Positions 9,081 through 25,384 of a DNA stretch of 64,000 bases are shown here, piece after piece. The position numbers and the translations under genes are program-made. Origin of the DNA: Hyalangium minutum (GTDB taxonomy: Bacteria > Myxococcota > Myxococcia > Myxococcales > Myxococcaceae); NCBI RefSeq assembly GCF_000737315.1, contig NZ_JMCB01000019.1, positions 173,596-237,595 of the forward strand, read 5' to 3'. Within the stretch, counting starts at the first letter, position 1. Each line of letters starts with the position of its first letter. The notes beneath the pieces were generated by a model. It saw only the letters and a program-made list of their open reading frames with translations, ran no database searches and was not told where the DNA came from.

Positions 9081-9114
9081 GCGGGTGCGGAGCCGCCTCG
9101 GCAGAGTGCGACGC

Positions 9115-10512
9115 ATGCACCTTCCCGCGTGGATCCGCGCCGCCGCCGTGGCGGGCTTCCTCAGTCACTCGGCCGCCTGGTCCCAGACGGCCCCCTCCGG
9201 CTTCGAGCTGGAGCGCCTGGAGCTCAACCTCGGTAAGGGCTCGCTCCTGTCCAGCCACGGCGAGCTGCTGGTCCCCACCGGCGTGAGCGCCGGGCTCGTC
9301 AGCCACTATGAGCACCTGCCGCTCGTGCTCCAGGACGGAGAGTCGCACCTGGAGCGGGTGCGGCACCGCGCCTCGCTCATGCTGGCGGCCAGCTACGGTG
9401 TGCTGCCGTGGCTCGAGGTGGGCGCGCAGATCCCCGCGGTGCTCTGGCAGCAAGGCGGGGATCCCAGCCTCCTGGGCCTGCCGCCGCTGACCGCGCGCGG
9501 GCTCGGGACGCCGATGCTCCAGGCCCGGCTGGGGCTGCTGTCGCGCCGCGAGGAGCACCCCGTGAACCTCGCGGTGGATCTCGCCGCGGGCCTACCTGTG
9601 GGGAGCGGCTCCGCGCTGGCGCGCGACGCGGGCCTGCGCTTCCGAGCCGGGGCCACGCTGGGGCTCGACTGGGGCTGGCTCCACCCCTCGCTCGAGGCGG
9701 GCGTGCTGCTGCGGCCGCCCAACCCCTTGTTCCGCAAAGGCTCGCCGCCCGTGGTCCCCGAGCTGCGCGTAAGCGCGGTGCTGGCCACGGCGAACCCGGG
9801 GCTTCGCGGCGAACTCGCCCTCCGGGGCGCCTTCGCGAGCGACGACAAGCAGCCCTCCCTGGAGCTGCTGGGCGGCGTGCGGTGGCCGCTGATGCCTCGG
9901 GTGGAGCTGCTCGCCCTGGGAGGCCCCGGCCTGGGCGCGGCGCCCGGAACGCCCTCCGCCCGCGTGCTGCTGGGGGTGAACTTCCTCATGGAGCCCCCGC
10001 CCGCATTGGAGCGGCTCACGGAGGCCATCCCTCACTTCACGCTGGAGCCGGAGGCCACCGCCGCACGCCGCGAGGTGCCCCGCCCGGCCGTGGCCCCCGT
10101 GCCCACGCGGGAGCTGCTCCCCACCGCAGTTCCGTTGGCCCACGCCACGCCCCTGCTGCAGGGCTCCGTGCTCTTCGAGCCGGGGCGGGCCGAGCTGCCC
10201 GCAGACCTCAGCCTGCCGCAGGCGGTGCTCGAGCTGCTGCGCTCGGAGCCCGGCAAGTCCATCGTCCTCCTCGAGGGGTACGCGGGCCAGGAGGACGCCG
10301 CGCAGGCCGATCGCCTCCTGCCCTTGAGGCGCGCGCAAGCGCTCCGGACCTACCTGGCGGGCCAGGGCGTGCCCTTGGAGCGCCTGCGGGTGCGAATCAC
10401 CAGCCCGGCCGCTTCCGCACACGCCCCCACGCCCGAGGACCTGGCGCGAGCGCGGCGGGTGGAGATGACCGTCCTGAGCGACCCCACCGCCGTCTCCGAG
10501 ACGACTCCCTGA
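9115..10512 (+). CDS. Outer-membrane beta-barrel plus OmpA-like C-terminal domain protein
   Basis: Signal peptide; GFELERLELN...barrel strands; C-terminal VLFEPGRAEL...LLEGYA...LPLRRAQALRTYL...RRVEM OmpA-like pattern. Confidence 0.8.
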   Translation: MHLPAWIRAAAVAGFLSHSAAWSQTAPSGFELERLELNLGKGSLLSSHGELLVPTGVSAGLVSHYEHLPLVLQDGESHLERVRHRASLMLAASYGVLPWLEVGAQIPAVLWQQGGDPSLLGLPPLTARGLGTPMLQARLGLLSRREEHPVNLAVDLAAGLPVGSGSALARDAGLRFRAGATLGLDWGWLHPSLEAGVLLRPPNPLFRKGSPPVVPELRVSAVLATANPGLRGELALRGAFASDDKQPSLELLGGVRWPLMPRVELLALGGPGLGAAPGTPSARVLLGVNFLMEPPPALERLTEAIPHFTLEPEATAARREVPRPAVAPVPTRELLPTAVPLAHATPLLQGSVLFEPGRAELPADLSLPQAVLELLRSEPGKSIVLLEGYAGQEDAAQADRLLPLRRAQALRTYLAGQGVPLERLRVRITSPAASAHAPTPEDLARARRVEMTVLSDPTAVSETTP

Positions 10513-10519
10513 GGCCGCC

Positions 10520-12205
10520 ATGTCCTTCGACTTCCACGCCATTCTCCAGCACGTCGAGGCAGCTGCCCCCACCGAGGGCCTCCCCGAGTGGCTCCCGCGA
10601 AGCTGGAGCGATCCGGAGGGCTTCGCCTCGGCGCTGGCCCCGGCGTACACGGGCCGCGGCGCGGCCTTCAAGAGCCGCACGGGCCAGCACCACGACTTCT
10701 TCCACGATCTCATCGTCCGGCACGCCACCACGGATCGCATCGCGCTGCGCACGTATGACCGGACGCGCGGCTGGCAGACGCTGAGCTACCGCCAACTGCA
10801 CGACCAGGCCCTCCGGCGGGCCGCAGCGTGGGAGCATCGAGGCGTCAAACCGGGAGCCCGGGTGTGCCTGATGTTCCACCCTGGCGCCGAGCTGTGGGTG
10901 AGCCTCGCCGCAGCGCTGGGGTTGGGAGCCTGCATCAGCCTGCTGCCGCCGGTGGGACAGCGCTTCGTCGCGCGCCGGCTCGCCGCGCTCGCACCGGGCC
11001 ACGTGGCCGCCGAGCCACACCAGGCGCCGCTGCTGGGCGCCTACGCCAAGTGCCTGCTGCCCACGACGGGGCCATCGGCGCCAGCGCTCGCCTCATACTC
11101 GTACAAGCCGGACGAGCCGGTGGGCCTGTTCTTCTCGCCTCTGGCGGCGCTCCCCTCCACCCCGGTGCCGCTCAAGGCGGGAGAGGCTTGGCTCGGCGCA
11201 CTGGTGGATGGGCTGCTCACCTTCGCGCTGGCGCCGGGAGATCACCTGACCGCTCCGGGCTTCCACCCACTCCAGCACCTGCCCGCGCTCATCTTCGCCA
11301 CGCTGCTGCGCGGAGCTACATTCCTCCACCTCGAGCCCTCGGATGTAGAGGAGCGCCCCAGCCTCCTGACCGAATACCCGGTGCGGGCGCTCGGGGTCAC
11401 CCCGGCCTTGAGGGACGTGCTGCTGCGGAGCCGGACGCCGCTGAAGAACGTAGGAGGCTGGTTCCGCAACCCCGAGGCCCCGCTCGACTGGCAGGCGTGG
11501 CGCGCGTGGGTGAAGCAGTGCGGGCTGGAGTCCGTGCCCTGCTCCAACGTGCTGGTGGATGCGGCCGCGGGAGGCGCAGTGCTTTGCTCGCTCCGGCGCG
11601 TGGGAGATGTCCACGCCGAGGCCGCTCCGGCGCCGGGCCGCCGCTGGGCCCTGGAGGCGCTCGACCGGAGTGGACAGCGGGCCGCAGGAGACTCGGGCGT
11701 CTTCACCCTTCTGCCCTCGGAGGGGCGGCCGCCAGGGCACGTCATCCTCTCCCGCCTCCGCCAGAAGTACCTCTACGGCGGGACGTGGGATGCGCGGCAC
11801 GAGGGCCGGGTCCCGCTCATGGCCGAGGTGACGGAGGCGCTGGCGGCCATGTCTCCGCCCTGTTCCACCTCGCTGCTCACCGTGCCGACGGGAGGCCTCT
11901 CGGGCGAGCTCCGCTCGATGTTGCTCGTCTTCACGGGCGCGCCCTCGCAGGGCGCGGCGCTGTCCCTGGCGGAGGTGCGCCGGTACCTCGAGCTGCAGCT
12001 TGGCGCCGAGCACGTACCAGAGCGGTTCGAGGTCTTCCCGCTCTACCCGAGGTTGAAAGAGGGCCAGGTGGACGCGGCGTGGTGCCACGCGCAGTACCTG
12101 ACGGGCGCGCTCTACCACAAAGCCCAGGAGCCGCTGTTCCAGACGCTCACGGAGCTGCGGGCCCAGGTGCGGCACGCCGCGCTCCCTTCCGAAACGAGGA
12201 GATGA
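10520..12205 (+). CDS. Degenerate AMP-binding (ANL-fold) protein in the T6SS operon
   Basis: LSYRQLHDQALRRAAAW...GVKPGARVCLM N-terminal pattern; the P-loop position reads FFSPLAALPSTP; the A10 motif reads LYPRLKEGQVD (Lys replaced by Gln). Confidence 0.7.
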   Translation: MSFDFHAILQHVEAAAPTEGLPEWLPRSWSDPEGFASALAPAYTGRGAAFKSRTGQHHDFFHDLIVRHATTDRIALRTYDRTRGWQTLSYRQLHDQALRRAAAWEHRGVKPGARVCLMFHPGAELWVSLAAALGLGACISLLPPVGQRFVARRLAALAPGHVAAEPHQAPLLGAYAKCLLPTTGPSAPALASYSYKPDEPVGLFFSPLAALPSTPVPLKAGEAWLGALVDGLLTFALAPGDHLTAPGFHPLQHLPALIFATLLRGATFLHLEPSDVEERPSLLTEYPVRALGVTPALRDVLLRSRTPLKNVGGWFRNPEAPLDWQAWRAWVKQCGLESVPCSNVLVDAAAGGAVLCSLRRVGDVHAEAAPAPGRRWALEALDRSGQRAAGDSGVFTLLPSEGRPPGHVILSRLRQKYLYGGTWDARHEGRVPLMAEVTEALAAMSPPCSTSLLTVPTGGLSGELRSMLLVFTGAPSQGAALSLAEVRRYLELQLGAEHVPERFEVFPLYPRLKEGQVDAAWCHAQYLTGALYHKAQEPLFQTLTELRAQVRHAALPSETRR

Positions 12206-12208: not shown

Positions 12209-12595
12209 ATGGGAATCCAAGTCGTCACGGGAGCCATGCTCCAGTGCAGCTTCGGCGTGGCGCCCTCCAGCCTGGTGGTGCTCCCGGCGAACAAGGTGAT
12301 GGCGACCACTCCGGCCGCCAACATCATGGACAACAAGCCGCTGGTGAACATCCCCCCGTTCGGGATGTGCCAATCCATGGCAAATCCGATGGTGGCCGCA
12401 GCCACGGCGGCGGCGCTGGGCGTGCTCACCCCAATGCCTTGCATTCCGGCGACGGCGGCGCCGTGGGCACCCGGCTGTCCCAAGGTGATGATCGGCAACA
12501 TGCCGGCCTTGGACAGCTCCTCCAAGTGCATGTGCAACTGGGGCGGCGTCATCCAGATCGTCAACCCCGGCCAGACGGCGGTGCAAGATGGCTGA
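12209..12595 (+). CDS. DUF4280 PAAR-like spike-tip protein (IglG-like)
   Basis: GAMLQCSFG, NIPPFGMC, PCIP, W-x-PG, KCMCNWGGVIQI: the DUF4280 Cys pattern. Confidence 0.9.
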   Translation: MGIQVVTGAMLQCSFGVAPSSLVVLPANKVMATTPAANIMDNKPLVNIPPFGMCQSMANPMVAAATAAALGVLTPMPCIPATAAPWAPGCPKVMIGNMPALDSSSKCMCNWGGVIQIVNPGQTAVQDG

Positions 12596-13715
12596 GTCTC
12601 TGCATTCGCTCGCGGCGCTGGAGCGCGCGTTGAGCACGGCCTCTGCTCCTGTCTCCTCGCTGACGCCCGAGCAGGTGGAGGCGCGGGTGGATCGGGTCAC
12701 CGCGCTGATGGCCCGGAGCGCCTACGACGAGGCGGCGCGCGCCTCCGAGGCATTGCTCACCGAGGGACTCCGGGATGTGCGGCTGGTAACGCCGTGCCTC
12801 TTCGGTGCCTTCCTGGAGCGCGGCCCGCGCGCTCTGCCCGGGATCTTCTCCGCCCTGCACCGAGTCCTCACGCGGAGCTGGGAGCAGCTTGGCCCCAGCG
12901 ACAAGAAGCCAGTCGTGGCGGACAGTGGGCTGCTCTGGCTGTTCAAGTCGCTTCACAAGCACCTGGAGTTCCATGGGCGGGCCCAGGACGACGTGTGGCG
13001 CAAGTGGTGCGAAAGCTGCGAGGCGTCTGAGATTCAGGAAGCGCTCCAGCGCGCAAGTGAGCTGTTCGAGGCTCTTGAACAGCTCCTGCCCAAAGGAGGG
13101 GGTACTACCCGGCTGCTCCAGTTGACCGGCTGGCTGACGGAGAACCGCGAGCTCTTCTCGGAGACTCCAGCCCGCCCTGCGCGGGCCCAGGCTGAGGAGT
13201 CCCCCAGGGCGGCGGCCATCTCTGAGCGCTGGGAGGAGGCGCCTTCCGCCGATCCAGAGGAGGAGGCGGAAGATGAGGAGGACGAAGAGCAAGAAGAAGC
13301 CACCGAGGAGCAGGCACTTGAAGCCGAGGATGACTCCGAAGAGGAGATCCTCTTCGAGCCCGTGGCGGTCCCGCAGCCCCGCTTGCCGCCACAGCCTGGT
13401 CTGGAGCCCTCTCCGGCGCTCGAGCAACTGCTGCACAAGCTGACCGCATTCGATCAGCTCGTAGAGCGTCAGGACTTCTCGCGGGCCAGCATGATTGCCA
13501 CGGACGTGCTCCATGTGATCGACCACTTCGATCCGCTCGTCTATCTGCCCTCGCTCTTCACACGCTTCCTCTCGGGCCTGAGCGCGCATGCGGGGAGCAT
13601 CGAGCCACGGATGCAGAGCCCTCGCTCCTTGGGTGAGCGTGCCCTCGAGCGGCTCTACCGGACGGACTTGCAGGCGTTCTTGAACTCCTCCTCCGGTGTG
13701 GAGGACGCGCCATGA
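12588..13715 (+). CDS. IglI-family / TssA(ImpA_N)-like T6SS protein
   Basis: RDVRLVTPCLFGAFLERGPRALPGIFSALHRVLTRSWEQLGP resembles the ImpA N-terminal KDLR...G...L...W..L.P pattern; acidic linker; overlaps both neighbours. Confidence 0.65.
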   Translation: MAESLHSLAALERALSTASAPVSSLTPEQVEARVDRVTALMARSAYDEAARASEALLTEGLRDVRLVTPCLFGAFLERGPRALPGIFSALHRVLTRSWEQLGPSDKKPVVADSGLLWLFKSLHKHLEFHGRAQDDVWRKWCESCEASEIQEALQRASELFEALEQLLPKGGGTTRLLQLTGWLTENRELFSETPARPARAQAEESPRAAAISERWEEAPSADPEEEAEDEEDEEQEEATEEQALEAEDDSEEEILFEPVAVPQPRLPPQPGLEPSPALEQLLHKLTAFDQLVERQDFSRASMIATDVLHVIDHFDPLVYLPSLFTRFLSGLSAHAGSIEPRMQSPRSLGERALERLYRTDLQAFLNSSSGVEDAP

Positions 13716-14632
13716 GAGACCTCTCATTCGAGCAACGGCTGCGCGAGCGCATCCGCGGGTTCGACATGCCCGCTCTGCTGGTGCTGCTGAAACACAAAAA
13801 GTATGCGCTGGAGCTGATCGAATACCGGAGCCACCGCACGCTCGTGCATCAGAGCCACCTGGTGCATGACATCCAGTTCAGCGACGAGTCACCCAGCCGG
13901 GTGATCATCACGGTGAACATCGGGCTGCTCAGCGTGCAGTCTCCTCTGCCCACCTTCCTGCATCAGACAATGAATCAGCTGGATCCGCTGGAGAGCGAGC
14001 GGATGGAACGTTTCCTGGGCTATTTCGACCACGAACTGCTCCGGGCGCGCTTCGCGGGGCTCTACCCTGAACGAAGCGCCTCGCTGCTTCCCGGCTGGGA
14101 GGAAGCGGCGCAGAACCGATTGAGCTTATTGAGCCTCACCAGCCCGAGCACGCTGCACTGGCTGTTCGCCCAAGTCTTCCCAGAGGCCGAAGTGTCCGTA
14201 CGGCGTGAGGTGCGCACTCAGGCCGTGCCAGCCCACGGCTCGCAGCTCGGTGTCACGGCATTGGGAGACTCCACGGCGTTGGGGGGCTTCGCCTCTGTGC
14301 CCACGGGCGGCATGGAAGTAACGGTCTTCTTCAATGAAAGTCATTGCGGAATAGGAACACCGTGGGCCATGGAAGCTCCGCTGCGCCTTTCCCATAGGCT
14401 CCTCCCTGTCTTCTCCCAGAGCTCGGCGCCACTCACCGCGTGGATGGTGTTGCGCGATCCGAGCGGTCCAGCCCGCCTCCAGCCAGACAACTACCTCGGC
14501 TATGTCCCGCTGGCGGGCACTGAGAACCTTCATCAACGTCTCTTGCTCTTCCGCGGCAACCTCGCGCATCCAACCCCAGACACGTCTAGCGGCCAGATAC
14601 CCAGCGTTTCGACCGAGCAGAGAGTGGCTTGA
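13712..14632 (+). CDS. tssG: TssG-like baseplate protein (IglJ position)
   Basis: ITVNIGLLSVQSPLP...FLGYFDHELL resembles the TssG V.FLGL.G..SPLP...DFLD.F.HRL pattern. Confidence 0.65.
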   Translation: MRDLSFEQRLRERIRGFDMPALLVLLKHKKYALELIEYRSHRTLVHQSHLVHDIQFSDESPSRVIITVNIGLLSVQSPLPTFLHQTMNQLDPLESERMERFLGYFDHELLRARFAGLYPERSASLLPGWEEAAQNRLSLLSLTSPSTLHWLFAQVFPEAEVSVRREVRTQAVPAHGSQLGVTALGDSTALGGFASVPTGGMEVTVFFNESHCGIGTPWAMEAPLRLSHRLLPVFSQSSAPLTAWMVLRDPSGPARLQPDNYLGYVPLAGTENLHQRLLLFRGNLAHPTPDTSSGQIPSVSTEQRVA

Positions 14633-16006: not shown

Positions 16007-16540
16007 TTGCCCATCCAAGACAAACTTCCCACGTCCCGCATCACCCTCACCTACCGCACCACCATCAACGGGCAGGAGGAAGAGGTTGACCTCCCCTTCC
16101 GCATGCTCGTCCTCGGCGACCTCTCCCTCGGCTCGTCCAAGGACCGCAAGGTGGATCTCGACGAGCGCAAGCTGCGCTCCGTCAAGCCCGGCGGTCTGGA
16201 TGACCTGATGAAGGACATGGACATGTCCATCGAGTTCCAGGTCCCCGACAAGACCACCTCCAGCGGCGAGGGCACGATGAACGTGAAGCTGCCCATCGAG
16301 CGCATGAAGTCCTTCCATCCGGACGAGTTCGTCCAGCACGTGCCCAAGCTCAAGGCCCTGCTCATCCTCCGCAAGCTGCTGCTCGAGATGCAGGCCGACA
16401 TCGACAACCGCAAGGAGCTCTGGCGCACGCTCTCCGAGCTCTACGCCCACCCGGAGCAGATCCAGCAGCTGCTCGAGAGCGACGCGCTCAAGGGCTTCGA
16501 GAACCTCCGCCTGCCCCCCGGCGAAGCGGCCGGCAACTGA
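16007..16540 (+). CDS. tssB: T6SS contractile sheath small subunit TssB (VipA/IglA)
   Basis: SRITLTYRT...DLPFRMLVLGDLS...KSFHPDEFVQHVPKLKALL. Confidence 0.95.
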   Translation: MPIQDKLPTSRITLTYRTTINGQEEEVDLPFRMLVLGDLSLGSSKDRKVDLDERKLRSVKPGGLDDLMKDMDMSIEFQVPDKTTSSGEGTMNVKLPIERMKSFHPDEFVQHVPKLKALLILRKLLLEMQADIDNRKELWRTLSELYAHPEQIQQLLESDALKGFENLRLPPGEAAGN

Positions 16541-16582
16541 GTTCCCCTCCACCCCCTGTCACCCCACAAGGAAACACCCACC

Positions 16583-18076
16583 ATGGCTGAGAAAAACTAC
16601 CTGCAGGAACTCTTCAAGAGCCGCGGCCTGGGCACCCCGCCCACCACCGCCGAGCCCATGATTGGCACCGGCCTCGTCCCCACCTCGCGCCAGGAGAGCG
16701 AGATCTCCACCGACAGCCGGTTCATGTCCGCGCTCGCCGCGCTGCTCCACAACGTCAAGCCGCTCCAGGACGAGGACAGCCGGCCGCGCTTCGACAAGGG
16801 CCAGGTGATGGACGCCGTGGCCCGCCTGGATGAGCTCATCGAGGCCCAGGTCAACGAGATCCTCCACCACGAGACCTTCCAGCAGGCGGAGTCCACGTGG
16901 CGCGGTGTGGAGGACCTCGTCAATCACACCAACTTCCAGGCCAACATCAACATCGATCTGCTCGACGTGTCCAAGCAGGAGCTGGCTCAGGACTTCGAGA
17001 AGAACGCGAGCAGCATCTTCTCCAGCTCGCTCTTCAACAAGGTCTACACCCACGAGTACGACCAGTACGGCGGCCGGCCGTTCGGCACGATGATCGGGCT
17101 GTACGAGTTCACCGCGTCCCGGCCGGATCTGCAGTGGCTCGAGCGCATGAGCTGGGTGGCCAACGCGGCGCACTGCCCCTTCGTGGCCTCGGCCAGCTAC
17201 AAGTTCTTCGACTGCGAGAGCGTGGAGCAGCTCGAGTCGCTCAAGAGCCTGGACGGAGTGCTCAACCACCCGCGCTACGGCAAGTGGGCGGAGCTGCGCG
17301 AGAGCGAGTCGGCCGCGTACATCAGCCTGGCGCTCCCGCGCTACGTGGTGCGGCTGCCGTACAACCCCGTCACCAACCCGTGCGAGGTGCTCAACTTCAC
17401 CGAGGAGGCCCACGGCGACTCCAAGAAGTACCTCTGGGGCAATGCCGCCATCCTCTTCGGCCGCAACCTGGCCAGCGCCTTCGAGGTGTCCGGCTGGTGC
17501 CAGTCCATCCGCGGCCCCAAGGGCGGCGGCCGCATCCAGGGCCTGCCGGTGGACACCTTCACCCTGCGCGGTCAGCAGGAGATGCAGATGCCGGTGGAGA
17601 TGTGCATCCCGGACTTCCGCGAGTACGAGTTCGTCCGCCACGGCTTCATGCCGCTCGTGTACCGGAAGAACGAGGCCGAGGCGACGTTCTTCAGCACCCC
17701 GTCCATCAAGCGCGCCAAGCGCTACAAGGATCCGAAGGACTCGGAGAACGCCCAGCTCGTCACCAACATGGCGTACACGTTCTCCATCACCCGGCTCGCG
17801 CACTACATCAAGAGCATCATGCGCGACAACATCGGCAGCTCCGCCGATGAGGTCTACGTCCACCAGCAGATCAGCAACTGGCTGATGGACTACGTGACCG
17901 CGGTGAGCAACCCGGATGACCTCACGCTGCGGCGCTTCCCGTTCAAGTCCGCTCAGGTGCTCGTGGCCAAGCGCCCGGGTGAGATCGGCTGGTACGACTG
18001 CAAGGTGTCGGTCCTGCCGCACATCCAGTTCGAGGGCCTCAACGTCGAGCTGCAGCTCGAGTCGCGGCTCGGCTAG
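16583..18076 (+). CDS. tssC: T6SS contractile sheath large subunit TssC (VipB/IglB)
   Basis: QVNEILHHETFQQAESTWRG, EYDQYGGRPFG, AAHCPF, LALPRY, YLWGNAA, GWCQSIRGPKGGG, VLPHIQFEG. Confidence 0.97.
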   Translation: MAEKNYLQELFKSRGLGTPPTTAEPMIGTGLVPTSRQESEISTDSRFMSALAALLHNVKPLQDEDSRPRFDKGQVMDAVARLDELIEAQVNEILHHETFQQAESTWRGVEDLVNHTNFQANINIDLLDVSKQELAQDFEKNASSIFSSSLFNKVYTHEYDQYGGRPFGTMIGLYEFTASRPDLQWLERMSWVANAAHCPFVASASYKFFDCESVEQLESLKSLDGVLNHPRYGKWAELRESESAAYISLALPRYVVRLPYNPVTNPCEVLNFTEEAHGDSKKYLWGNAAILFGRNLASAFEVSGWCQSIRGPKGGGRIQGLPVDTFTLRGQQEMQMPVEMCIPDFREYEFVRHGFMPLVYRKNEAEATFFSTPSIKRAKRYKDPKDSENAQLVTNMAYTFSITRLAHYIKSIMRDNIGSSADEVYVHQQISNWLMDYVTAVSNPDDLTLRRFPFKSAQVLVAKRPGEIGWYDCKVSVLPHIQFEGLNVELQLESRLG

Positions 18077-18118
18077 TCCCCAATCCCTCTTTCCCAATCC
18101 CTTTCACGAGAGAACACC

Positions 18119-18691
18119 ATGCCTCGCTTCAGCCGCAGTCTGGATGTGTACCAGGGCTTCAACTTCAAGAAGGACAAGCAGAGCAACGTCGGCGTGCTCC
18201 TGACCATGAAGGTCGGGGGCAAGGAGCTGAAGGCCGATCTGGAGACCATCAAGGATCCGGAGCAGCCCACCAAGGACATCAAGGCCGTTGGGGTGCTCAA
18301 CCACTACCTGTGGGAGACGGGCTCCACGGACTCCATGTACTTCGCCGGGCAGATCTCCACCGAGAACCGGCAGACGCTGGCCATGCTCATCCTCAATGAC
18401 TTGACCAACATCGAGGTGGAGTTCAGCTACGCCATCTACCAGTTCGACCCGCTGGAGAAGAAGTACTTCAAGTCCAGCTTCCACAAGTCCGCGCTCAAGG
18501 GCCTGGTGGAGAAGAGCGGGGACGAGCTGAAGGTGATGGTCGACGATGATCCGGCGGAGGAGGTCACCTCGCCGCAGAACTTCACCTTCCAGATCGGCAT
18601 CAAGCCGCAGCCCCAGGAGCAGCAGGTGACCCTGGCCAGCGCGCCGCAGATGAAGGTCGAGAAGAAGTGGGGCTTCAAGAGCGGCAAGTAG
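18119..18691 (+). CDS. Putative inner-tube protein, IglC-like (not canonical Hcp)
   Basis: Directly after tssC; beta-rich 190 aa; lacks typical Hcp motifs; TMKVGGKEL and FTFQIGIKP resemble recalled IglC segments. Confidence 0.6.
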   Translation: MPRFSRSLDVYQGFNFKKDKQSNVGVLLTMKVGGKELKADLETIKDPEQPTKDIKAVGVLNHYLWETGSTDSMYFAGQISTENRQTLAMLILNDLTNIEVEFSYAIYQFDPLEKKYFKSSFHKSALKGLVEKSGDELKVMVDDDPAEEVTSPQNFTFQIGIKPQPQEQQVTLASAPQMKVEKKWGFKSGK

Positions 18692-18730
18692 CCGCCAGGC
18701 CTCACCCCACCCGCTGAGTTCGAGCCCACC

Positions 18731-19987
18731 ATGGATCCCCACAAGATCGCCCGCGTCCGCTGGCAGGCGGGGCAGATGCTCCTGCCCGAACACTTCCGCG
18801 CCCAGGACGAAGTCCTCTCCGCCGAGACGCTGCTCTCAGCGGAGCTCACCGGCCTGCCTCCCGTGGGCATCGGTGGGCTCGAACTCAACCGGGCCCAGCT
18901 GGCCGAGGGCACCTTCTCCCTCGGCTCGCTGACAGCCCTCATGCCGGGTGGCCAGCTTGTGCAGGTGCCCGGCAACGCCACCGTAGCGCCCATCTCGCTG
19001 GAGGAGACGGGCCGCTCGCGGCTCACGCTCTACCTCCACCTGATGCACGAGACCCGCGGCGCCGAGGGAATTCCCCTGTACGCGAAGGATCCTCCCGCGC
19101 TCCACCGGGCGCTCCACATCCTCCAGCTCTCCGCCGAGCAGGCCCTGGATGGGGCGATCAGCTCGCTGCCGCTGGCCGAGCTCCAGAAGGATGAGCTGGG
19201 GCGGTGGGAGCTGTCGCGGGAGCAGCTTCCTCCCCTGCTGCGCGCCAGCCCCCACCCGTTCCTGGATGGGCTGTTCTCCTGCCTGGACGAGCTGCTGGAG
19301 CAGGCGCACGGGCAGCTGCGCACGGCCATCCGTGACCACTACGTGCGCGGCGACCGGCTCTCCAATGCCCGGCGTGCCCTGTGCGAGGTGCGCCGCGCCC
19401 AGGGCCTGCGCGCGGACATGCGCCATGGCCTCCACCCCTCCACCTACCACCTCTTCTCGATGCTCCGCGAGCTGTACCTGCAGATGTGCTGCTACCTGGA
19501 GTGCGAGCCGGCGGAGGAGCTGCCCGCCTACGAGCACGACGCACCGGGCCCGGGCCTGTGGCAGTGGATGAAGCTGCTCGCGGGTGGCCTCCGCCCGAGC
19601 CAGGCAAACCGCCGCACGTACCAGCCCCTCGACTGCCGCGAGGGACGCTTCGTGATCTCGCCCTTGCCCCAGGAGGAGCCCGCGCCGAACGACTTCTACC
19701 TGCTGATCCGGCGTCACGAGCGCGACAAGCCTCGCGCTTTGGAGGGCGTGAAGATCGCCAGCCCCCTGCGCCTGCCCCTCGTGCGGCGACAGGCCCTCAA
19801 GGGCCTCACCTTCCGCCACGTGCCGTACCCCTCGTTCCCGCACGCGTTCGACTCGGACATCGACTGGTACCAGCTCACGACCGAGGGCGAGGAGTGGCAG
19901 GCCGTGCTGCGCGAGGGCGGGCTCTCCCTCCCCGTGACGCCGCCGCTGGAGGGAGCCCAGGTGTTCCTCTTCTGGAGGAGGACGTGA
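18731..19987 (+). CDS. tssK: TssK-like baseplate connector (IglD-like)
   Basis: RVRWQAGQMLLPEHFRAQD matches the TssK W.EG..L.PQHFQQQD pattern; position after the tube gene as iglD. Confidence 0.8.
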   Translation: MDPHKIARVRWQAGQMLLPEHFRAQDEVLSAETLLSAELTGLPPVGIGGLELNRAQLAEGTFSLGSLTALMPGGQLVQVPGNATVAPISLEETGRSRLTLYLHLMHETRGAEGIPLYAKDPPALHRALHILQLSAEQALDGAISSLPLAELQKDELGRWELSREQLPPLLRASPHPFLDGLFSCLDELLEQAHGQLRTAIRDHYVRGDRLSNARRALCEVRRAQGLRADMRHGLHPSTYHLFSMLRELYLQMCCYLECEPAEELPAYEHDAPGPGLWQWMKLLAGGLRPSQANRRTYQPLDCREGRFVISPLPQEEPAPNDFYLLIRRHERDKPRALEGVKIASPLRLPLVRRQALKGLTFRHVPYPSFPHAFDSDIDWYQLTTEGEEWQAVLREGGLSLPVTPPLEGAQVFLFWRRT

Positions 19988-19988
19988 C

Positions 19989-20369
19989 ATGCCACGCCGG
20001 CCCTTTCTCGACAGGTTCTCCAGCCGCGGCGCCTCTGCGCGGGAGCCGCTGGGCCCCGTTCTGCGCAACCTCGAGGCGGTGCTCAACACCCGCGAGGGCT
20101 ACGGCTTCTTCCAGCAGGGCTTCGGGCTCGGGGACTACACCGGGGACCGCGGCGGCAAGGAGCTGGTGCCGTTCCTCACGGAGGAGCTGCAGCGCCAGGT
20201 GGCGCAGTACGAGCCCCGGCTGCGCGACGTGGAGGTGACGCTGCGTGGCCAGGACGCCGCCCTGTGCCTGCACTTCGAGGTGACGGGCCTGCTGAGCGGC
20301 GAGGCCCTGCGGCTGGGGCTGATCTTCGACACCGTGAGCAGCCGGGTGCGGCTGGAGAGGAAGGACTGA
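19989..20369 (+). CDS. tssE: TssE / gp25-like baseplate protein
   Basis: VLRNLEAVLNTR...FGLGD...VAQYEPRLRDVEV. Confidence 0.85.
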   Translation: MPRRPFLDRFSSRGASAREPLGPVLRNLEAVLNTREGYGFFQQGFGLGDYTGDRGGKELVPFLTEELQRQVAQYEPRLRDVEVTLRGQDAALCLHFEVTGLLSGEALRLGLIFDTVSSRVRLERKD

Positions 20370-20370
20370 C

Positions 20371-22014
20371 ATGCCAGACACATTCGAGGACAGGCTGGCC
20401 GTCTCGCTGACGCTCACCGTGGAGGGACAGGCACACGCCATCCCTCCCGGCAACATCCAGTCCTTTCATCTGGAGCTGCATGGCTGGGGACTGGAGGGGC
20501 GGGTGGAGTTCATCCTCACCGACAACAAGAGCCTGGGCGGCAAGCAGAAGGACACCCTGCTGCCGGACTTCCTCAAGCCCGGCCTCGCCGAGGTGGCGCT
20601 CGAGGTGAGCGCCGTCCAGACGGACGCCAAGCCCAAGCAGAAGCCCACGCCGCTGAAGCTCCAGGCGCTCGTGTCCTCCAAGGCGCTCGTGGAGCTGCCG
20701 GGTGGCTCCGGCCCGAAGGCCGCTCTGCTGCACCGCCGCTACACCGTGCACTTCCTGGACGCGGCCCAGCTGCTGTGGCGCCAGCACCACCCGTGCGCGC
20801 TCTACACGCAGAAGACCTTCAAGGATGTCCTCGACGAGCACAAGGGCGAGAAGATCCAGCTGACCTATGACTGGGACGCCGTGCTGGGCGTCTCGCAGCC
20901 GCTGCTCTTCCTTGGGCTGGAGCGGGAGCTGGGAGCGAGCTTCTACGACTTGCTCCAGTGGTACCTGGAGCGCCACCAGGGCGTGCTGGCGTATGACGCG
21001 GAGAAGGGCAGCTACTCCCTGCTCGGCGCGAAGTCGGAGAAGGGCAAGCCGCTAGAGCTGGATCCCGGAGAGGTGGCCTCGCTGGAGGTGCACCTGCCCG
21101 AGGTCATCCGCCACGGGGCCACCATCCTCAACGCCGTGGCCGAGGACCCCAAGCGCGAGGAGCTCACCCATGCCCAGGCCGTGAAGGGGCTTCGCCAGGA
21201 CGTACTGCTGTGCACGCCGCTGGCCGACTCGGTGCAGGCCCGGGTGGATCTGGAGAAGGCCCGCCTCGAGGCGCGGGGCATGGAGCTGGAGCTGGAGTGG
21301 CGGCGCATGCCGGCCCAGGCCTTCGCGCCGGGGACGCTGGTGAAGCTCTCGCCGGAGAAGGGCTGGAACCCGGCCAGCGTGGCCGCGAAGGACACCTTCC
21401 GGATCCGCTCCATGAGCCTCCACGGGCAGGCGCTCGTGGCCGACCCCGACGCGGAGCGCGAGGCTTCGAGTGCGGGCTTCCACTTCCAGATGAGCACTCG
21501 GCTGGAGCGCCAGGACGAGCGCTGGATCGACCGCCCCGCGTACACCCCTCCGCGCTTTCCTCGGTACGTCGAAGGCTTGCTGGTGAGCGAGGTGGGCGAG
21601 GAGAAGCACGAGACATGGCAGGTCTACAGCGAGGAGAAGACCTCGCTGGACAGCTACCGCATCCAGCTGCCGATCTTCGAGGACCAGGTGGTGAGCGCCC
21701 CCTTCAATCCCAACTTGCTGCCGGGCCACTTCTACTTCCCCGCCTACAAGAAAGAGCGAGTGCTGGTGGCGCTGGACTTCCAGCGGGCTTGGGTCAAGCG
21801 CTTCCTGGACTGGCGGGCCAGCGCGCGGATGCCGCAGGAGAGCCAGGGCGTGCAGCTGCTGATGGGCAAGACGCCCACCAACGGCGCCACCCTCCAGCAG
21901 TCCTATGAAGACGACAAGCCCGTGCTCTTGCTGCAGCGCACCCACGAGAAGGACCTGGGGGTGATCCGCCTGCGCGAGGGCTCGATGCGAATCCAGATCA
22001 AGGAAGAGGACTAG
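20371..22014 (+). CDS. VgrG N-terminal hub protein (gp27-like plus OB-fold; PdpA-like), no beta-helix
   Basis: LYTQKTFKDVL...SFYDLLQWYLERHQGVL and GHFYFPAYKKERVLVAL resemble VgrG hub and OB-fold motifs; ends at 547 aa. Confidence 0.65.
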   Translation: MPDTFEDRLAVSLTLTVEGQAHAIPPGNIQSFHLELHGWGLEGRVEFILTDNKSLGGKQKDTLLPDFLKPGLAEVALEVSAVQTDAKPKQKPTPLKLQALVSSKALVELPGGSGPKAALLHRRYTVHFLDAAQLLWRQHHPCALYTQKTFKDVLDEHKGEKIQLTYDWDAVLGVSQPLLFLGLERELGASFYDLLQWYLERHQGVLAYDAEKGSYSLLGAKSEKGKPLELDPGEVASLEVHLPEVIRHGATILNAVAEDPKREELTHAQAVKGLRQDVLLCTPLADSVQARVDLEKARLEARGMELELEWRRMPAQAFAPGTLVKLSPEKGWNPASVAAKDTFRIRSMSLHGQALVADPDAEREASSAGFHFQMSTRLERQDERWIDRPAYTPPRFPRYVEGLLVSEVGEEKHETWQVYSEEKTSLDSYRIQLPIFEDQVVSAPFNPNLLPGHFYFPAYKKERVLVALDFQRAWVKRFLDWRASARMPQESQGVQLLMGKTPTNGATLQQSYEDDKPVLLLQRTHEKDLGVIRLREGSMRIQIKEED

Positions 22015-22026
22015 GAGCGGCACGCC

Positions 22027-22626
22027 ATGGCGAAGCTCATCTGCACCATCGATCTGGACAAGGAGAAGGGCCTCACCGTCACGGTCGAGGATCCCGAGGG
22101 CAAGCTCACCCAGACGGTGATGCTGGATGGCAAGGCCATCACCCTGGAGGTGAAGAGCGACTCGGACACGAGCACCATCGTCCAGAAGGCAGACAGCATC
22201 AGCGTCACCTGCAAGGCCTTCAGCGTGGAGGCCGACACCATCACCTTGAAGTCCAAGAAGGAGTCGGCGTGGACGAGCGACGAGACGCTGGAGCTCAAGA
22301 GCACGAAGGACATGGCGCTCACCTCCAGCGCGAAGCTGACGCAGAAGGCCTCGAAGGACGCGGTCCTCTCCTCCAACGCCAACCTGGAGCTGAAGGCCAC
22401 GCAGAAGCTCACGCTCGAGGGAATGGAGGGCCAGGTGTCCGCCACCGGAGGGCCGCTCAAGCTGGAGGGAGTGAAGCTGGAGCTGAAGGGCAAATCCCAG
22501 GCGGAGCTGGGAGCCCCGCTCATCAAGGTGGCGGCACAGGGACAGCTGGGACTCGAGTCCTCGGGGATCGCGGAGCTGAAGGGCTCGATGACCAGCGTAA
22601 GCGGCTCGCTCGTGAAGCTGGGGTGA
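22027..22626 (+). CDS. vgrG: Stand-alone short VgrG/gp5-type beta-helix spike
   Basis: Ser/Thr/Lys-rich short beta-strand repeats ending ELKGSMTSVSGSLVKLG. Confidence 0.75.
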   Translation: MAKLICTIDLDKEKGLTVTVEDPEGKLTQTVMLDGKAITLEVKSDSDTSTIVQKADSISVTCKAFSVEADTITLKSKKESAWTSDETLELKSTKDMALTSSAKLTQKASKDAVLSSNANLELKATQKLTLEGMEGQVSATGGPLKLEGVKLELKGKSQAELGAPLIKVAAQGQLGLESSGIAELKGSMTSVSGSLVKLG

Positions 22627-22644
22627 GCGGACCGCCCTCGCTCC

Positions 22645-22683
22645 TGTGACGCAGTTCACACGCTTCCTATGGGGGCCCTCACA
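22645..22683. promoter_or_regulatory. Tandem CRP/FNR-type boxes upstream of tssF
   Basis: Perfect TGTGA-CGCAGT-TCACA (22645) and TATGG-GGGCCC-TCACA (22668), 23 bp apart. Confidence 0.7.
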
Positions 22684-22760
22684 GCCCCTTCGGTGAAGAA
22701 CGCTCAGAGTACGCGGCATCCGGGACGCCCACCGCCCCGGGTGAACGGATGGGATTTGCC

Positions 22761-24407
22761 ATGGCTGAAACGAATCAGCTCTATCAGGACTACCTCGCGG
22801 AGCTGGCGGCGCTCGAGCGCTTCCGCCAGGGCTTCCGCCACACCTACCCCGGCGTTCCCCTGGAGCAGGAGGACCCGGATGTGCGCCGGCTGGTGGAGGC
22901 CCTGGCCTTCTTCTCCGTGCAGACGCGGCACGCCACGCTGCGCAACCTCCGCTCCACGTGGCTGCGATTGTTCTCCAGCTTCTTCCACTGCCTGCTGGAG
23001 CCACTGCCTGCCACGGGCCTGGTGCAGGCGGCTCCCACGGAGAAGATGGTGGAGGCGGCAGTGCTGCCCCGAGGCACCGAGCTGAGCCTGCGGCCCGTGG
23101 GCGGCGAGGCGGGCTCCTTCCGCCTCGAGCGGGACCTGCGGGTGCTGCCCATCTTCCTGGAGGAGACGCAGGTGCTGAGCCTGGCGGATGGCGGCCACCG
23201 CCTCATCCTCCGCTTCGCCGCGGCCTTCCCTCGGAGGGATCCGGTGGAGGTGCTCAGCCTCCACGTGCGCCACCTGGAGGAGTACGGCAGTTCCCTGGCG
23301 GTGTACCACGCGCTCCGCAAGCATCTGCAGCAGGTGCGCGTGGTGTATGACGCGAAGGCGGATGAGCGCTCCGCGGGGCAGCTATGCGAGCACTCCTTCG
23401 GGCCGACGCCGTTCGCGCCCGATGACGCGAGCCTCTACGCCAACCCCCTGCAGCGCGCGCGCTCCTTCTTCCAGCTCCCGGAGCAGGGGCTCTTCCTGCA
23501 CATCCGGGTGGCGCCCACGCGGCAGGCCTGGAACCGCTTCAGCCTGTGCCTGGACTTGAAGAAGGAGTGGTCCGTGGGCCGCTCGCGCCACCCGGACTTC
23601 CTGCGCCCCTTCGTCGCGCCCGTCGTCAACCTCAAGGCCGCGCCCGCACAACCCATCACCCTGGATGGCACCCGCACCGAGCACCCGCTGTTGGGGCTGC
23701 GCAACGGCCATGGCTTCCGTCTGCACTCGGTGACGGGCGTCTACGTGCAGGGCTCCCGAGGCCGCGAGCCCATGCGTCCCGCCCACGTGCCTGGGCCCGG
23801 CCCCTCCTACGAACTGGACGAGCAGCTGGCCGCGGATGGCAACCCCTTGCACCAGCTGCTGGTGCAGATGCCGGAGGCCTTCCTCGAGCCGCGCAAGCTG
23901 CACGTGGACGCGCTCTGGTACCAGCCCCACTTCGCCACCGAGGCGATGGGCCGCCTCGAGGCCTCGACGCCCAGCCTCCACGTGGAGGGACTGCGGTGGC
24001 GCGTGCTGGGGGACGTGCAGCCGCCTCGCGAGAGCCCCCTGCGCCAGGACGTGCCCGCGCTGACGCGGCTGCTCTCGTGGAAGGTCCGCCCCACCCTGGA
24101 GCGGGACGAGCTGGCCGCCCTCCTGTCCTATCTGGGCACGTTCCAGGAGAGCGCCTTCGGCCCCATCCTCCCGCTGTTGCGCGCGCTGAGGTGCTCCGTG
24201 CTGCCGGATGGCGCGCTGCGCGGCACGGGGCTGCGGCACGTGTACGAGGCGCGGCTCGCGCCCTTCGACGCCAGCCAAGAGGCCCTCGTCGCCTGCTTCC
24301 TCGAGCAGGTGCTGGCCCTGCTGGACGCATGGAACGGCGAGGCCTCCGTGGAGCTGCGGCCCTCGGTGGACGGCGCTGGAGCTTTCAACCCCTGGGGAAC
24401 GCCATGA
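22761..24407 (+). CDS. tssF: TssF-like baseplate protein (IglH-like)
   Basis: YQDYLAELAALERFRQGF...EDPDVRRLVEALAFF; PFVAPVVNL. Confidence 0.85.
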   Translation: MAETNQLYQDYLAELAALERFRQGFRHTYPGVPLEQEDPDVRRLVEALAFFSVQTRHATLRNLRSTWLRLFSSFFHCLLEPLPATGLVQAAPTEKMVEAAVLPRGTELSLRPVGGEAGSFRLERDLRVLPIFLEETQVLSLADGGHRLILRFAAAFPRRDPVEVLSLHVRHLEEYGSSLAVYHALRKHLQQVRVVYDAKADERSAGQLCEHSFGPTPFAPDDASLYANPLQRARSFFQLPEQGLFLHIRVAPTRQAWNRFSLCLDLKKEWSVGRSRHPDFLRPFVAPVVNLKAAPAQPITLDGTRTEHPLLGLRNGHGFRLHSVTGVYVQGSRGREPMRPAHVPGPGPSYELDEQLAADGNPLHQLLVQMPEAFLEPRKLHVDALWYQPHFATEAMGRLEASTPSLHVEGLRWRVLGDVQPPRESPLRQDVPALTRLLSWKVRPTLERDELAALLSYLGTFQESAFGPILPLLRALRCSVLPDGALRGTGLRHVYEARLAPFDASQEALVACFLEQVLALLDAWNGEASVELRPSVDGAGAFNPWGTP

Positions 24408-25045
24408 ACCTGGAACATTGGAAGATCGTCTTCGCGCAGTACCGGCAGACGCGCGCGCTGTTGGACCAATGGCTGCCGGCCGAGACCTCGCGAAGCGAGG
24501 AGCGCACCCAGGTCCTCGTAGGACGCGCGGGGCTGGCGCAGTTGCAGCAGCAGTTACTGGTGGCGCTGGACGGCCTGCGCTCGGGGCTGGGCAGCCACTA
24601 CCGCTCCGAGGAGGTGGACGACGCGCTGCGGCCCTTCATCTATCTGCTAGATGAGCGGGTGCTGCTGCGCCTGGCCGAGGCCGAGCAGTACGACTGGCCC
24701 CCGCTGCAGCGCCACCTCCGCGGCGAGGAGGGCGGTGGAGACCTGTTCTTCGAGCTGGCGGACCAGAAGCTGAACCAGCCAGGAGCCTCGCCGCTGGTGT
24801 TCGAGCTGCTGCACTTCTGCCTCACCGCGGGCTTCGGCGGCCGCTACCTGGGCAACACGGCGAAGCTGCGTGAGTACAAGCAGCGGCTGGGGGCCCGCAT
24901 CGTCACCCCCGAACCCGCGCCTGCCGCGCCTCCCGCAGCCACGAACGCGCGGCCCCTGCTCTACGAGTTCCCCGCCCGCTACTACGCCGGCGCCTGCCTC
25001 TGCTTCCTGGGGCTGCAGGGCCTGCTGTGGTGGCTCTCCAACTGA
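24404..25045 (+). CDS. tssL: DotU/TssL membrane protein
   Basis: PFIYLLDERVL...LQRHLRGEEGGGDLFFE...LHFCLTAGFGGRY; C-terminal TM helix; ATGA overlap with tssF. Confidence 0.9.
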   Translation: MNLEHWKIVFAQYRQTRALLDQWLPAETSRSEERTQVLVGRAGLAQLQQQLLVALDGLRSGLGSHYRSEEVDDALRPFIYLLDERVLLRLAEAEQYDWPPLQRHLRGEEGGGDLFFELADQKLNQPGASPLVFELLHFCLTAGFGGRYLGNTAKLREYKQRLGARIVTPEPAPAAPPAATNARPLLYEFPARYYAGACLCFLGLQGLLWWLSN

Positions 25046-25054
25046 GGCGCCGCC

Positions 25055-25381
25055 ATGACTGCATCCCTTGCGAGAACAGGCAGTGAGCGCGCCTCCGTCC
25101 CGGCGGCCCCCGCGCTGCTGGAGCGCCTGGAGCGGCTCATCGACACGGAGCTGGGCCCCCTGCGAGCAGGCGTCGAGCCGCTGCTGGTGGACCTGCGCCA
25201 GGGCCTGGCAGCGCTCTTCCCGGGACCTGGAGGACAGCAGCTCTCGCCCCAGCAGCAGCAAGAGCAGCGCACCCGGCTCGACCAGGTGCTGGACACACTC
25301 GAAGACATTCTGGAGGCGCTGCAGCGCACCGCACGTGCGCAGCGCCGCACGGGCCCCACGGTGGGCCGGAGAGAGAGCTGA
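25055..25381 (+). CDS. Small helical hypothetical protein between tssL and tssM
   Basis: 108 aa with Leu/Glu heptads; 9 nt after tssL and 3 nt before tssM. Confidence 0.6.
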   Translation: MTASLARTGSERASVPAAPALLERLERLIDTELGPLRAGVEPLLVDLRQGLAALFPGPGGQQLSPQQQQEQRTRLDQVLDTLEDILEALQRTARAQRRTGPTVGRRES

Positions 25382-25384
25382 ATC

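Follow-up and report, generated by a model that had tools for sequence, protein, structure and literature searches.

A family of ANL-fold pseudoenzymes almost always encoded directly before the PAAR-like tip gene of Francisella-like T6SSs

The locus and its genes

The window considered here, i.e., the whole 64,000-nucleotide stretch of Hyalangium minutum DNA that was analysed, contains on its forward strand a T6SS gene cluster whose features are collected in Table 1. The open reading frame at 10520-12205 is a real gene encoding a protein of 561 aa and 60.8 kDa (the ANL-like protein). The reading frame begins with an ATG, which is taken as the right start codon because an N-terminal M-x-F-D is conserved among homologs, and its GC3 of 0.88 is typical for coding sequence of the same genome. 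The close packing of this gene had been described in an earlier, sequence-only reading of the DNA, and both distances given there hold: the gene starts 7 nt after the upstream OmpA-family ORF, which ends at 10512, and only 3 nt separate its TGA stop (12203-12205) from the ATG (12209) of the gene for a DUF4280 PAAR-like tip protein. The ribosome-binding site of the tip gene, GAGGAG, lies within the 3′ end of the ANL-like gene.

The genes that follow encode an IglI-family protein, a TssG-like protein in the IglJ position and, farther downstream, the remaining T6SS components. The cluster matches the IglE_N and IglI_fam models and carries a short VgrG; a sequence search of the PDB with its 547-aa and 190-aa proteins, aimed at a link to Francisella PdpA/IglC, gave no match. 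Sequence and hydropathy analysis of the ANL-like protein revealed neither a signal peptide nor a transmembrane segment, and a transmembrane or Sec-secreted reading was rejected, the sole hydrophobic stretch being the buried A2 element. A role in anti-phage defence was likewise rejected, PADLOC having given no match.

Table 1. Coordinates of the ANL-like gene, its parts and the surrounding T6SS genes in the window
Feature	Position	Strand	Basis or remark
OmpA-family protein (TraB-like barrel + peptidoglycan-binding domain), directly upstream	9085..10512	+	Domain matches
ANL-fold pseudoenzyme gene	10520..12205	+	ORF call, GC3, partial PF00501 match, AF2 + Foldseek, family profile vs Acs
Sole part sequence-recognisable as AMP-binding (aa 70-144, structural motifs A1/A2)	10727..10951	+	PF00501
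Degenerate A3/P-loop position, FFSPLAALPSTP (aa 204-215)	11129..11164	+	Loop between model strands 200-205 and 215-219
Degenerate A5 position, VDAAAGG (aa 346-352)	11555..11575	+	Profile alignment: Acs WWQTETGG opposite lvDAAAGG
Degenerate A10 position, LYPRLKEGQVD (aa 508-518)	12041..12073	+	Acs SLPKTRSGKI opposite PlyPRreegkv
Helical C-terminal extension specific to the family, following A10 (aa 519-554), candidate interaction surface	12074..12181	+	AF2 model + conservation
DUF4280 PAAR-like tip protein (128 aa), proposed binding partner	12209..12595	+	PF14107, 130.4 bits over aa 5-122
IglI-family protein, conserved module	12588..13715	+	NCBIfam NF041244, 261.9 bits (cut-off 100); syntenic
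TssG-like (IglJ-position) baseplate protein, conserved module	13712..14632	+	PF06996, 24.9 bits (cut-off 24.6); syntenic
TssB, TssC, 190-aa tube-position protein, TssK, TssE, 547-aa unknown (rest of T6SS)	within 16007..29520	+	NCBIfam/Pfam
Short VgrG, TssF, TssM-like, IglE-like lipoprotein (rest of T6SS)	within 16007..29520	+	NCBIfam/Pfam

Fold and active-site positions of the ANL-like protein

At the sequence level, the kinship of the protein with ANL enzymes is visible only in part. Pfam PF00501 matches with 48.9 bits (cut-off 29.9) over aa 70-144, corresponding to profile positions 8-78 of 384, NCBIfam and PDB sequence matches are limited to the same segment, and PF13193 (AMP-binding_C) finds no match in the protein. 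The AF2 model (pLDDT 77.8, pTM 0.77) extends the relationship to the full length: it has the large N-terminal and small C-terminal domains of the two-subdomain ANL fold, and Foldseek, the comparison proposed by the sequence-only reading, aligned it with Acs, EntE, CahJ, PltF, 4-CBL (4-chlorobenzoyl-CoA ligase) and MenE over 510-658 columns at probability 1.00, with E values of 3.5e-25 to 4e-23 and TMq values of 0.54-0.71, at or above 0.60 in all but one case; for full-length enzymes such as Acs, EntE and 4-CBL, E is about 1e-25 and TM 0.62-0.71. Furthermore, a profile of the family aligns with Salmonella enterica Acs at E=7e-25, collinear through to the A10 motif. The ANL-family scaffold proposed earlier is thus borne out by three kinds of comparison, and, as modelled, the protein keeps the full fold of an acyl-CoA synthetase.

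In ANL enzymes, the P-loop (A3) serves the ATP phosphates, the A5 Glu binds Mg2+, the A7 Asp and A8 Arg contact the ribose, and the A10 Lys is required for adenylation; the canonical P-loop reads (T/S)SG(T/S)TGxPKG. The sequence-only reading had called the protein a pseudoenzyme on the grounds of a degenerate P-loop and a Gln in place of the A10 Lys, and had named intact catalytic motifs in an alignment as an outcome that would speak against this; the comparison instead returned degenerate motifs throughout. At the P-loop place, between two strands, the protein has FFSPLAALPSTP, and [LV]F[SD]P[LF]..P...P, without a Gly-rich, Thr or Lys motif, is the consensus of the family; the A3 position was located from secondary structure and from its distance to the aligned block rather than from a residue-level alignment, and none of 260 family members matches the P-loop pattern. 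The Mg-binding Glu of A5 is replaced by Ala. The A7 Asp is gone, Acs YxxGD lying opposite a gap and the corresponding stretch in the window being Gly or hydrophobic, and A8, examined together with its hinge residue, is degenerate as well, its Arg having become Thr (Acs GRVDD opposite G-T-W-D-A). Lastly, the catalytic Lys609 of Acs pairs in the profile alignment with Gln516, in a column that across the family holds A, E, R, K, G, V or Q, with Lys in about 9% of the 260 members. The replacement of A3, A5, A7, A8 and A10 supports the view that the protein is catalytically dead, and the loss is family-wide rather than a local decay.

Several other positions are strongly conserved across the family, among them S206, P207, G351, G352, S357, D518, W521, G529 and L531. 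Since the catalytic sites are lost and these positions are kept, selection acts on something other than catalysis. A conserved pocket may still bind a ligand. Compared with Acs, EntE, 4-chlorobenzoyl-CoA ligase and other ANL enzymes, with which they have in common the two-subdomain fold and A1/A2, the pseudoenzymes possess conserved extensions of their own at the N-terminus (aa 1-60) and C-terminus (aa 519-554), and their genes sit in a T6SS context instead of metabolism or NRPS. The C-terminal extension, preceded by the conserved D518 that ends the A10 stretch, is modelled as three helices (519-527, 530-536 and 538-554; pLDDT 85-91), carries the conserved residues W521, C522, Q525, G529, L531 and K534, and is a candidate interaction surface.

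Extent of the family and its linkage to the secretion system

The ANL pseudoenzymes form a large, previously undescribed protein family, almost always encoded directly before the PAAR-like tip gene of a Francisella-like T6SS. The family comprises at least 347 clusters at 50% identity (matches at E<=1e-30) and spans about 48 clades; the GC of the loci ranges from 0.33 to 0.74. A metagenome scan with a narrower clade alignment contributed 11 loci, further alignment-based homolog searches returned mainly members of the myxobacterial clade or metagenome proteins, and tblastn against plasmids found no match to the family. In public records, the members are labelled "AMP-binding protein" or "long-chain fatty acid--CoA ligase"; the latter label is probably wrong for the family, which would amount to a systematic misannotation, the proteins likely being part of a secretion machine and not ligases.

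In 66 of the 70 informative loci, the next gene downstream, on the same strand, is that for DUF4280, the loci without an adjacent copy including L010, a rearranged locus, L061 and L073. Other T6SS genes are present in 66 of 73 loci, and of the seven loci without them, six are short contigs; the occurrence of homologs mostly away from T6SS loci, which would have told against the earlier proposal, is therefore clearly not what is seen. Both linkages persist in members whose identity to the window protein is only 28-36%, and over the entire range of locus GC. In one lineage, the two genes have become one: P0206, known from two low-coverage metagenome contigs, is a single 778-aa protein within a T6SS locus, in which the ANL-like part is followed by DUF4280 at aa 668-776. 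Programmed read-through of the stop codon was considered as another way of joining the two products, as both ORFs share a frame in the window, where they are separated by TGA-CCG, and do so in 30 of 67 loci, 26 of them with a single stop between. The idea was dropped because these in-frame counts are near one third, the chance expectation when the relatedness of the loci is taken into account.

The wider module, IglE / ANL-like / DUF4280 / IglI / TssG-like, is met with repeatedly, in loci whose members share as little as 28% identity. The OmpA-family gene is linked only in some loci (the window, L001-L003, L012, L015, L019, L020, L022, L024, L048, L050 and L070), and in many remote loci IglE stands at the upstream place instead. 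Relative to the window protein, members within Myxococcota have a median identity of 60% and those from remote loci one of 33%, and the same comparison gives 54/30 for TssK, 50/32 for TssE and 56/32 for VgrG; the ANL-like protein diverges as these components do, and therefore co-evolves with the T6SS machine. Additionally, genomes with two such T6SS loci carry two copies of the gene, one in each locus (e.g., L012/L018 and L015/L033).

A proposed role at the spike tip

From genomic context and analogy, we consider it fairly probable that the protein is an inert descendant of an acetyl/acyl-CoA-synthetase-type (ANL) enzyme that has become a dedicated structural component of a Francisella-island-like class of T6SS. 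Its most likely role is that of a non-enzymatic, spike-tip-associated partner of the PAAR-like protein, which would be required for completing or loading the tip. The 3-nt spacer and the internal ribosome-binding site suggest that the two proteins are made together through translational coupling, and the near-universal adjacency of their genes, the natural fusion and the IglF-IglG precedent point to binding of the ANL-like protein to the PAAR-like cone. The resulting complex would cap the short VgrG spike and so permit efficient assembly of baseplate and sheath, by analogy with the phenotypes of iglF and iglG deletions. Upon firing, the protein would exit the cell on the spike; in the fused lineage, the ANL-like part must do so, because it forms one polypeptide with DUF4280. 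The contribution would be structural, in stabilising or loading the tip, rather than one of adenylation or thioester chemistry. A metabolic-enzyme fold recruited in this way would add a new type of accessory to the T6SS spike, and a clean case of a pseudoenzyme fixed in a nanomachine.

The Francisella island has the gene order iglE-(vgrG)-iglF-iglG-(iglH-dotU)-iglI-iglJ. The earlier suggestion that the ANL-like gene occupies an iglF-like position has been strengthened, in that the order of the module in remote loci mirrors that of the island, and the rough agreement in size holds as well (60.8 kDa vs 67.9 kDa for IglF). Both proteins are encoded immediately upstream of a DUF4280/PAAR-like gene in a T6SS cluster with IglE- and IglI-type genes; the likeness is one of gene position, size and context, not of sequence or fold. 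In Francisella, iglF sits just ahead of iglG, and its product both binds IglG and is secreted (PMC5014421); when either gene is deleted, sheath assembly falls to about 1 event for every 400-500 cells (PMC5481754). Binding, secretion and a need in sheath assembly are thus properties of IglF and predictions for the ANL-like protein. The site on IglG to which IglF binds is an N-terminal alpha-helical extension. This extension is missing from the DUF4280 proteins here, a caveat already attached to the sequence-only reading and now confirmed: in the window, the DUF4280 domain begins at residue 5, and the match to the 173-position NCBIfam IglG model sets in at its position 56. Any contact of the ANL-like protein must therefore use a different surface. 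Among the NCBIfam models, none named for IglF matched the full-length protein, two C-terminal fragments or two remote members at E<=10, and no description of IglF as ANL-like was found in the literature searched. On balance, the best reading of the analogy is that the ANL-like protein may be the functional counterpart of Francisella IglF.

Accessory proteins encoded beside PAAR or VgrG genes are familiar from other systems. DUF2169 (TvpA), DUF1795 (Eag) and DUF4123 (Tap/Tec) proteins stabilise or load the tip and are sometimes needed for assembly (PMC13373197). The ANL-like fold is unrelated to theirs, and PF00501 is the sole Pfam match of the ANL-like protein, which contains none of the DUF4123, DUF1795 and DUF2169 domains; while those accessories serve canonical PAAR/DUF4150 proteins in T6SSi, the ANL-like protein pairs with DUF4280 in an IglE/IglI-type system. 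The P0206 fusion also resembles PAAR and PAAR-like proteins with N- or C-terminal extensions, but the ANL-like part shows no recognisable toxin, is not accompanied by an immunity partner and, in nearly all lineages, exists as a protein of its own.

The same facts can be read in other ways. DUF4280 proteins are reported to be insoluble on their own (PMC5014421), and TvpA, like Eag chaperones, acts ahead of spike assembly by stabilising PAAR-type proteins (PMC13373197), so that the ANL-like protein could be solely a cytoplasmic chaperone that keeps an aggregation-prone DUF4280 cone soluble, passes it to the VgrG spike and is released unsecreted. The close gene pairing fits this account equally well; however, the P0206 polypeptide cannot leave its ANL-like part behind and the positional counterpart IglF is secreted (PMC5014421), and we regard a chaperone-only function as unlikely. 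Somewhat less probable still is a delivered effector, i.e., a non-enzymatic cargo, such as a lipid- or membrane-binding protein, which the PAAR-like protein would carry and which would function inside the target cell, even though IglF has been termed a putative effector (PMC5014421; PMC8651086). Acyl chains and CoA are ligands of the ancestors of the ANL fold, effectors are frequently found fused to PAAR and PAAR-like domains, and a fusion of the ANL-like protein with DUF4280 does exist. Effectors, however, are usually variable and swapped, whereas this gene has a fixed position, is inherited with the apparatus over about 48 clades and diverges at the rate of structural genes. Moreover, no catalytic or toxin motif is left in the protein, searches with Pfam, NCBIfam and PADLOC found no toxin domain, the gene has no immunity-like partner, and its neighbours are conserved apparatus genes, OmpA or IglE on one side and DUF4280 on the other.

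We give very little weight to a protein that is still an enzyme or a small-molecule sensor, whose remodelled site would bind or convert another ligand, perhaps linking T6SS firing to a metabolite or modifying one of the T6SS components. Conservation near the former active site is strong (e.g., S206-P207, G351-G352, S357, R426-R427-x-G429-R430 and R511) and the fold is well predicted, but the P-loop, A5 Glu, A7 Asp, A8 Arg and A10 Lys are replaced in every clade, and the module contains no partner carrier protein or CoA-related gene.

A further and more tentative idea is that Francisella IglF itself belongs, in highly diverged form, to the ANL-pseudoenzyme family, so that a dead ANL protein and a DUF4280 cone would be the tip module from which a large T6SS class, T6SSii included, descends; this seems to us possible, though rather less than evenly likely. 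It offers a testable idea for the identity of IglF, which is needed for Francisella T6SS assembly and has no fold or function assigned. If true, a fold and an origin could be assigned to IglF, along with tractable homologs from non-pathogens that number in the hundreds, and the class would be widespread in Myxococcota and many uncultured lineages instead of being confined to Francisella. The IglE/IglI/DUF4280-type T6SS exists well outside this genus, while the literature searched still terms the type genus-restricted in 2026.

Gene structure and fold

The ANL-like gene begins with ATG and encodes 561 aa, and the start codon is right, since an N-terminal M-x-F-D is kept among homologs. Its third-position GC of 0.88 is as in the neighbouring genes (window 65-74% GC). 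A gap of 7 nt separates it from the upstream OmpA-family ORF and one of 3 nt separates its stop codon (TGA, 12203-12205) from the ATG of the DUF4280 gene, with a GAGGAG within its final codons ahead of that ATG; the coordinates and spacings of the sequence-only reading were all correct. The two ORFs share one reading frame, with only TGA-CCG between them (12203-12211). A shared frame occurs in 30 of 67 loci, which is not clearly above chance, and stop-codon read-through fusing the two proteins was dropped as a candidate.

By sequence, likeness to AMP-binding proteins is limited to aa 70-144, where Pfam PF00501 scores 48.9 bits (cut-off 29.9) and covers positions 8-78 of its 384; sequence matches from NCBIfam and the PDB do not extend beyond these residues. 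With 28 homologs as input, AlphaFold2 gave a model (mean pLDDT 77.8, pTM 0.77) that Foldseek matched to full-length Salmonella acetyl-CoA synthetase (Acs), EntE, CahJ, PltF, 4-chlorobenzoyl-CoA ligase, and MenE in the PDB, with E 3.5e-25 to 4e-23, probability 1.00, and 13-18% identity over 510-658 columns. TM scores were 0.54-0.71, and 49 of the 50 matches listed reached at least 0.60. Additionally, a family profile of 56 diverse members aligned with Acs in two blocks, as far as the A10 motif (E=7e-25). The ANL-family scaffold recognized earlier is upheld: it is real and includes both subdomains.

Loss of the catalytic motifs

In the profile alignment, the A10 motif of Acs (SLPKTRSGKI) corresponds to PlyPRreegkv in the family, placing Gln516 opposite the catalytic Lys609, whereas A5 (WWQTETGG) corresponds to lvDAAAGG, with Glu replaced by Ala. 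The YxxGD of A7 lies opposite a gap, and the corresponding residues of the window protein, 406-412, are family-wide either Gly or hydrophobic, and A8 (GRVDD in Acs) reads G-T-W-D-A, with loss of Arg. The A3 motif (P-loop), which falls outside the HMM alignment, was placed by secondary structure and spacing to the next aligned block in the model's loop 206-214, which is flanked by strands 200-205 and 215-219; this position reads FFSPLAALPSTP in the window protein. Across a 260-member alignment, its consensus is [LV]F[SD]P[LF]..P...P, none of the 260 members carries a P-loop-like pattern anywhere in its sequence, and the A10 column contains A/E/R/K/G/V/Q, with Lys in about 9%. The loss of the P-loop and of the A10 Lys noticed in the window copy is therefore family-wide, with A5, A7, and A8 also degenerate; it is ancient and does not reflect recent decay of the window copy. 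Residues that are strongly conserved (S206, P207, G351, G352, S357, G421, G429, R511, D518, W521, C522, G529, L531) include some in a helical extension that follows A10 and is specific to the family (aa 519-554, pLDDT 85-91) and in an N-terminal extension. Since all five catalytic motifs are lost despite a fold common to the ANL enzymes, the protein is, judged by its residues, not classed as an adenylate-forming enzyme.

Family distribution and a proposed role at the PAAR-like tip

A word-indexed search yielded 122 relatives with at least 49% identity, each of them from Myxococcaceae or Archangiaceae, which are named "AMP-binding protein" or "long-chain fatty acid--CoA ligase" in their sources, a widespread annotation that the present reading corrects. 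When 1.84 billion cluster representatives were searched exhaustively with a profile, at least 347 matched at E<=1e-30, forming about 48 groups with less than about 38% mutual identity; the best 150 of these are nearly all full-length matches of about 570 aa. Remote members reside on metagenome contigs with a GC of 0.33 to 0.74, plasmid searches gave no match, and additional searches for homologs brought in no new named taxa. Two of them, P0184 and P0239, carry C-terminal tails of ~170-260 aa from about residue 570, composed of Pro-rich repeats (PPPEGEAPPP, PPSDAPP).

The loci collected were 57 from genomes, 5 contigs of remote members, and 11 from metagenomes. In 66 of the 70 that were informative, DUF4280 lies directly downstream in the same orientation, which, with the family-wide motif loss, supports the initial interpretation of a pseudoenzyme recruited as a structural part, chaperone, or tip cargo. 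It is adjacent on the opposite strand in one and was not found in the neighbourhood in three: L010, which is rearranged and has Ig-repeat and Kelch proteins on its flanks; L061; and L073, with kinases downstream. Other T6SS genes occur in 66/73 loci (six of the seven exceptions are short contigs), so that homologs are found mostly at T6SS loci rather than away from them. The order IglE/ANL-like/DUF4280/IglI/TssG-like recurs in remote loci, and where a genome carries two such T6SS loci, each has a single ANL-like copy of its own. In one remote locus (L062), a clpB-type AAA+ gene at 7283-9988 directly precedes the ANL-like gene, recalling the Francisella system, in which ClpB takes the place of ClpV.

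These data support a dead ANL enzyme that serves as a PAAR-associated accessory of the T6SS. They fit a protein that lost its enzyme chemistry long ago, and we consider it reasonably probable that it was kept as a T6SS part physically tied to the PAAR-like tip. A precedent is IglF, whose gene lies immediately before iglG and which binds IglG and is secreted (PMC5014421). The ANL-like protein would be co-produced with DUF4280 and bind it; the pair would cap the short VgrG spike, spike completion would license baseplate and sheath assembly, and the ANL-like protein would leave the cell with the spike. DUF4280 proteins were reportedly insoluble by themselves (PMC5014421), deletion of iglF or of iglG each reduces sheath assembly to ~1 event per 400-500 cells (PMC5481754), and assembly requires a pre-complex in which PAAR-type proteins are stabilised by DUF2169 TvpA proteins (PMC13373197); no Pfam match placed the ANL-like protein in the DUF4123/DUF1795/DUF2169 adaptor families. 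It appears to resemble IglF in every respect testable by genomics, and the family may explain IglF, for which no fold assignment was found in the literature searched. One finding weighs against a plain repeat of the IglF mechanism: the window DUF4280 lacks the N-terminal helix of IglG that IglF binds, a caveat of the sequence-only reading that Pfam and NCBIfam matches confirmed.

A chaperone retained inside the cell would equally fit the gene pairing, but is unlikely in view of P0206, a single 778-aa protein comprising an ANL-like part, a ~100-aa linker, and a DUF4280 domain (aa 668-776; E=2.9e-8 to the window DUF4280), encoded on two contigs between DotU and IglI-like/TssG-like genes. This fusion, like the older view of IglF, would suit a delivered effector, which we regard as still less probable given the fixed gene position, the lack of an immunity partner or toxin motif, and apparatus-like divergence. 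The ANL-like protein has a median identity to the window copy of 60% in Myxococcota and of 33% in remote loci, close to TssK (54/30), TssE (50/32), VgrG (56/32), and TssB (62/47); conservation is higher for DUF4280 (82/63) and lower for IglI (40/27). A remodelled enzyme or sensor is very improbable, as none of the residues with which the ANL fold binds ATP, Mg, or ribose would be available to it.

The surrounding cluster

Features in and just upstream of the window T6SS cluster, in gene order
Feature	Coordinates (strand)	Remarks
DUF2380 predicted lipoprotein	5931-6638 (+)	153.8 bits
Gmx_para_CXXCG family protein	6663-7376 (+)	284 bits
399-aa protein	7814-9013 (+)	Ala/Gly-rich; no Pfam/NCBIfam match
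OmpA-family	ends 10512	directly upstream of ANL-like
ANL-like	10520-12205 (+)	
DUF4280	12209-12595 (+)	PAAR-like tip protein
IglI-family		262 bits
TssG-like		
409-aa ORF	14629-15858 (+)	GC dip 0.62
TssB, TssC		sheath
190-aa protein	18119-18691 (+)	tube position
TssK, TssE		baseplate
547-aa protein	20371-22014 (+)	
Short VgrG		weak match to Francisella type
TssF, then TssM-like		
IglE-like lipoprotein		PF22361, 113.9 bits
1781-aa protein	29658-35003 (+)	ASH/HYDIN/Cep192-type Ig-like repeats; closes cluster

By gene content, the region 9085-35003 is likened to a Francisella-island T6SS in a high-GC myxobacterium, where an IglE_N lipoprotein and an IglI-family protein are encoded together with an IglG-like DUF4280 and a short VgrG; ClpV is missing from the cluster, yet TssE, TssF, TssG, and TssK are recognisable. 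T6SSii has been described as exclusive to Francisella up to 2026 (PMC12955703; PMC13584744), and no AMP-binding-like T6SS component was found in the literature searched.

The 547-aa and 190-aa proteins are conserved in nearly all related loci and have no family match and no match in PDB sequence searches; by position, they could be a PdpA-like spike partner and an IglC/Hcp-like tube protein, respectively. The 409-aa ORF, absent from 57/57 related genome loci and without a Pfam, NCBIfam, PDB, or PADLOC match, could be an effector gene inserted in this strain only; visual inspection shows a likeness of its 'APEFFF ... EICLDH' to a Glu/Cys pair of the nitrilase type. The PADLOC scan for anti-phage defence gave no match. 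Just upstream of the cluster, the DUF2380 and Gmx_para_CXXCG genes form a myxobacterial paralogous pair, and no counterpart of the 399-aa protein was found in related loci. A 1867-aa protein similar to the repeat protein closing the cluster lies upstream of the ANL-like gene in L010 (Archangium gephyra, 4203-9806), and in the family member P0140 a repeat protein of this kind is joined to an ANL-like one, the call being chimeric or frameshifted.
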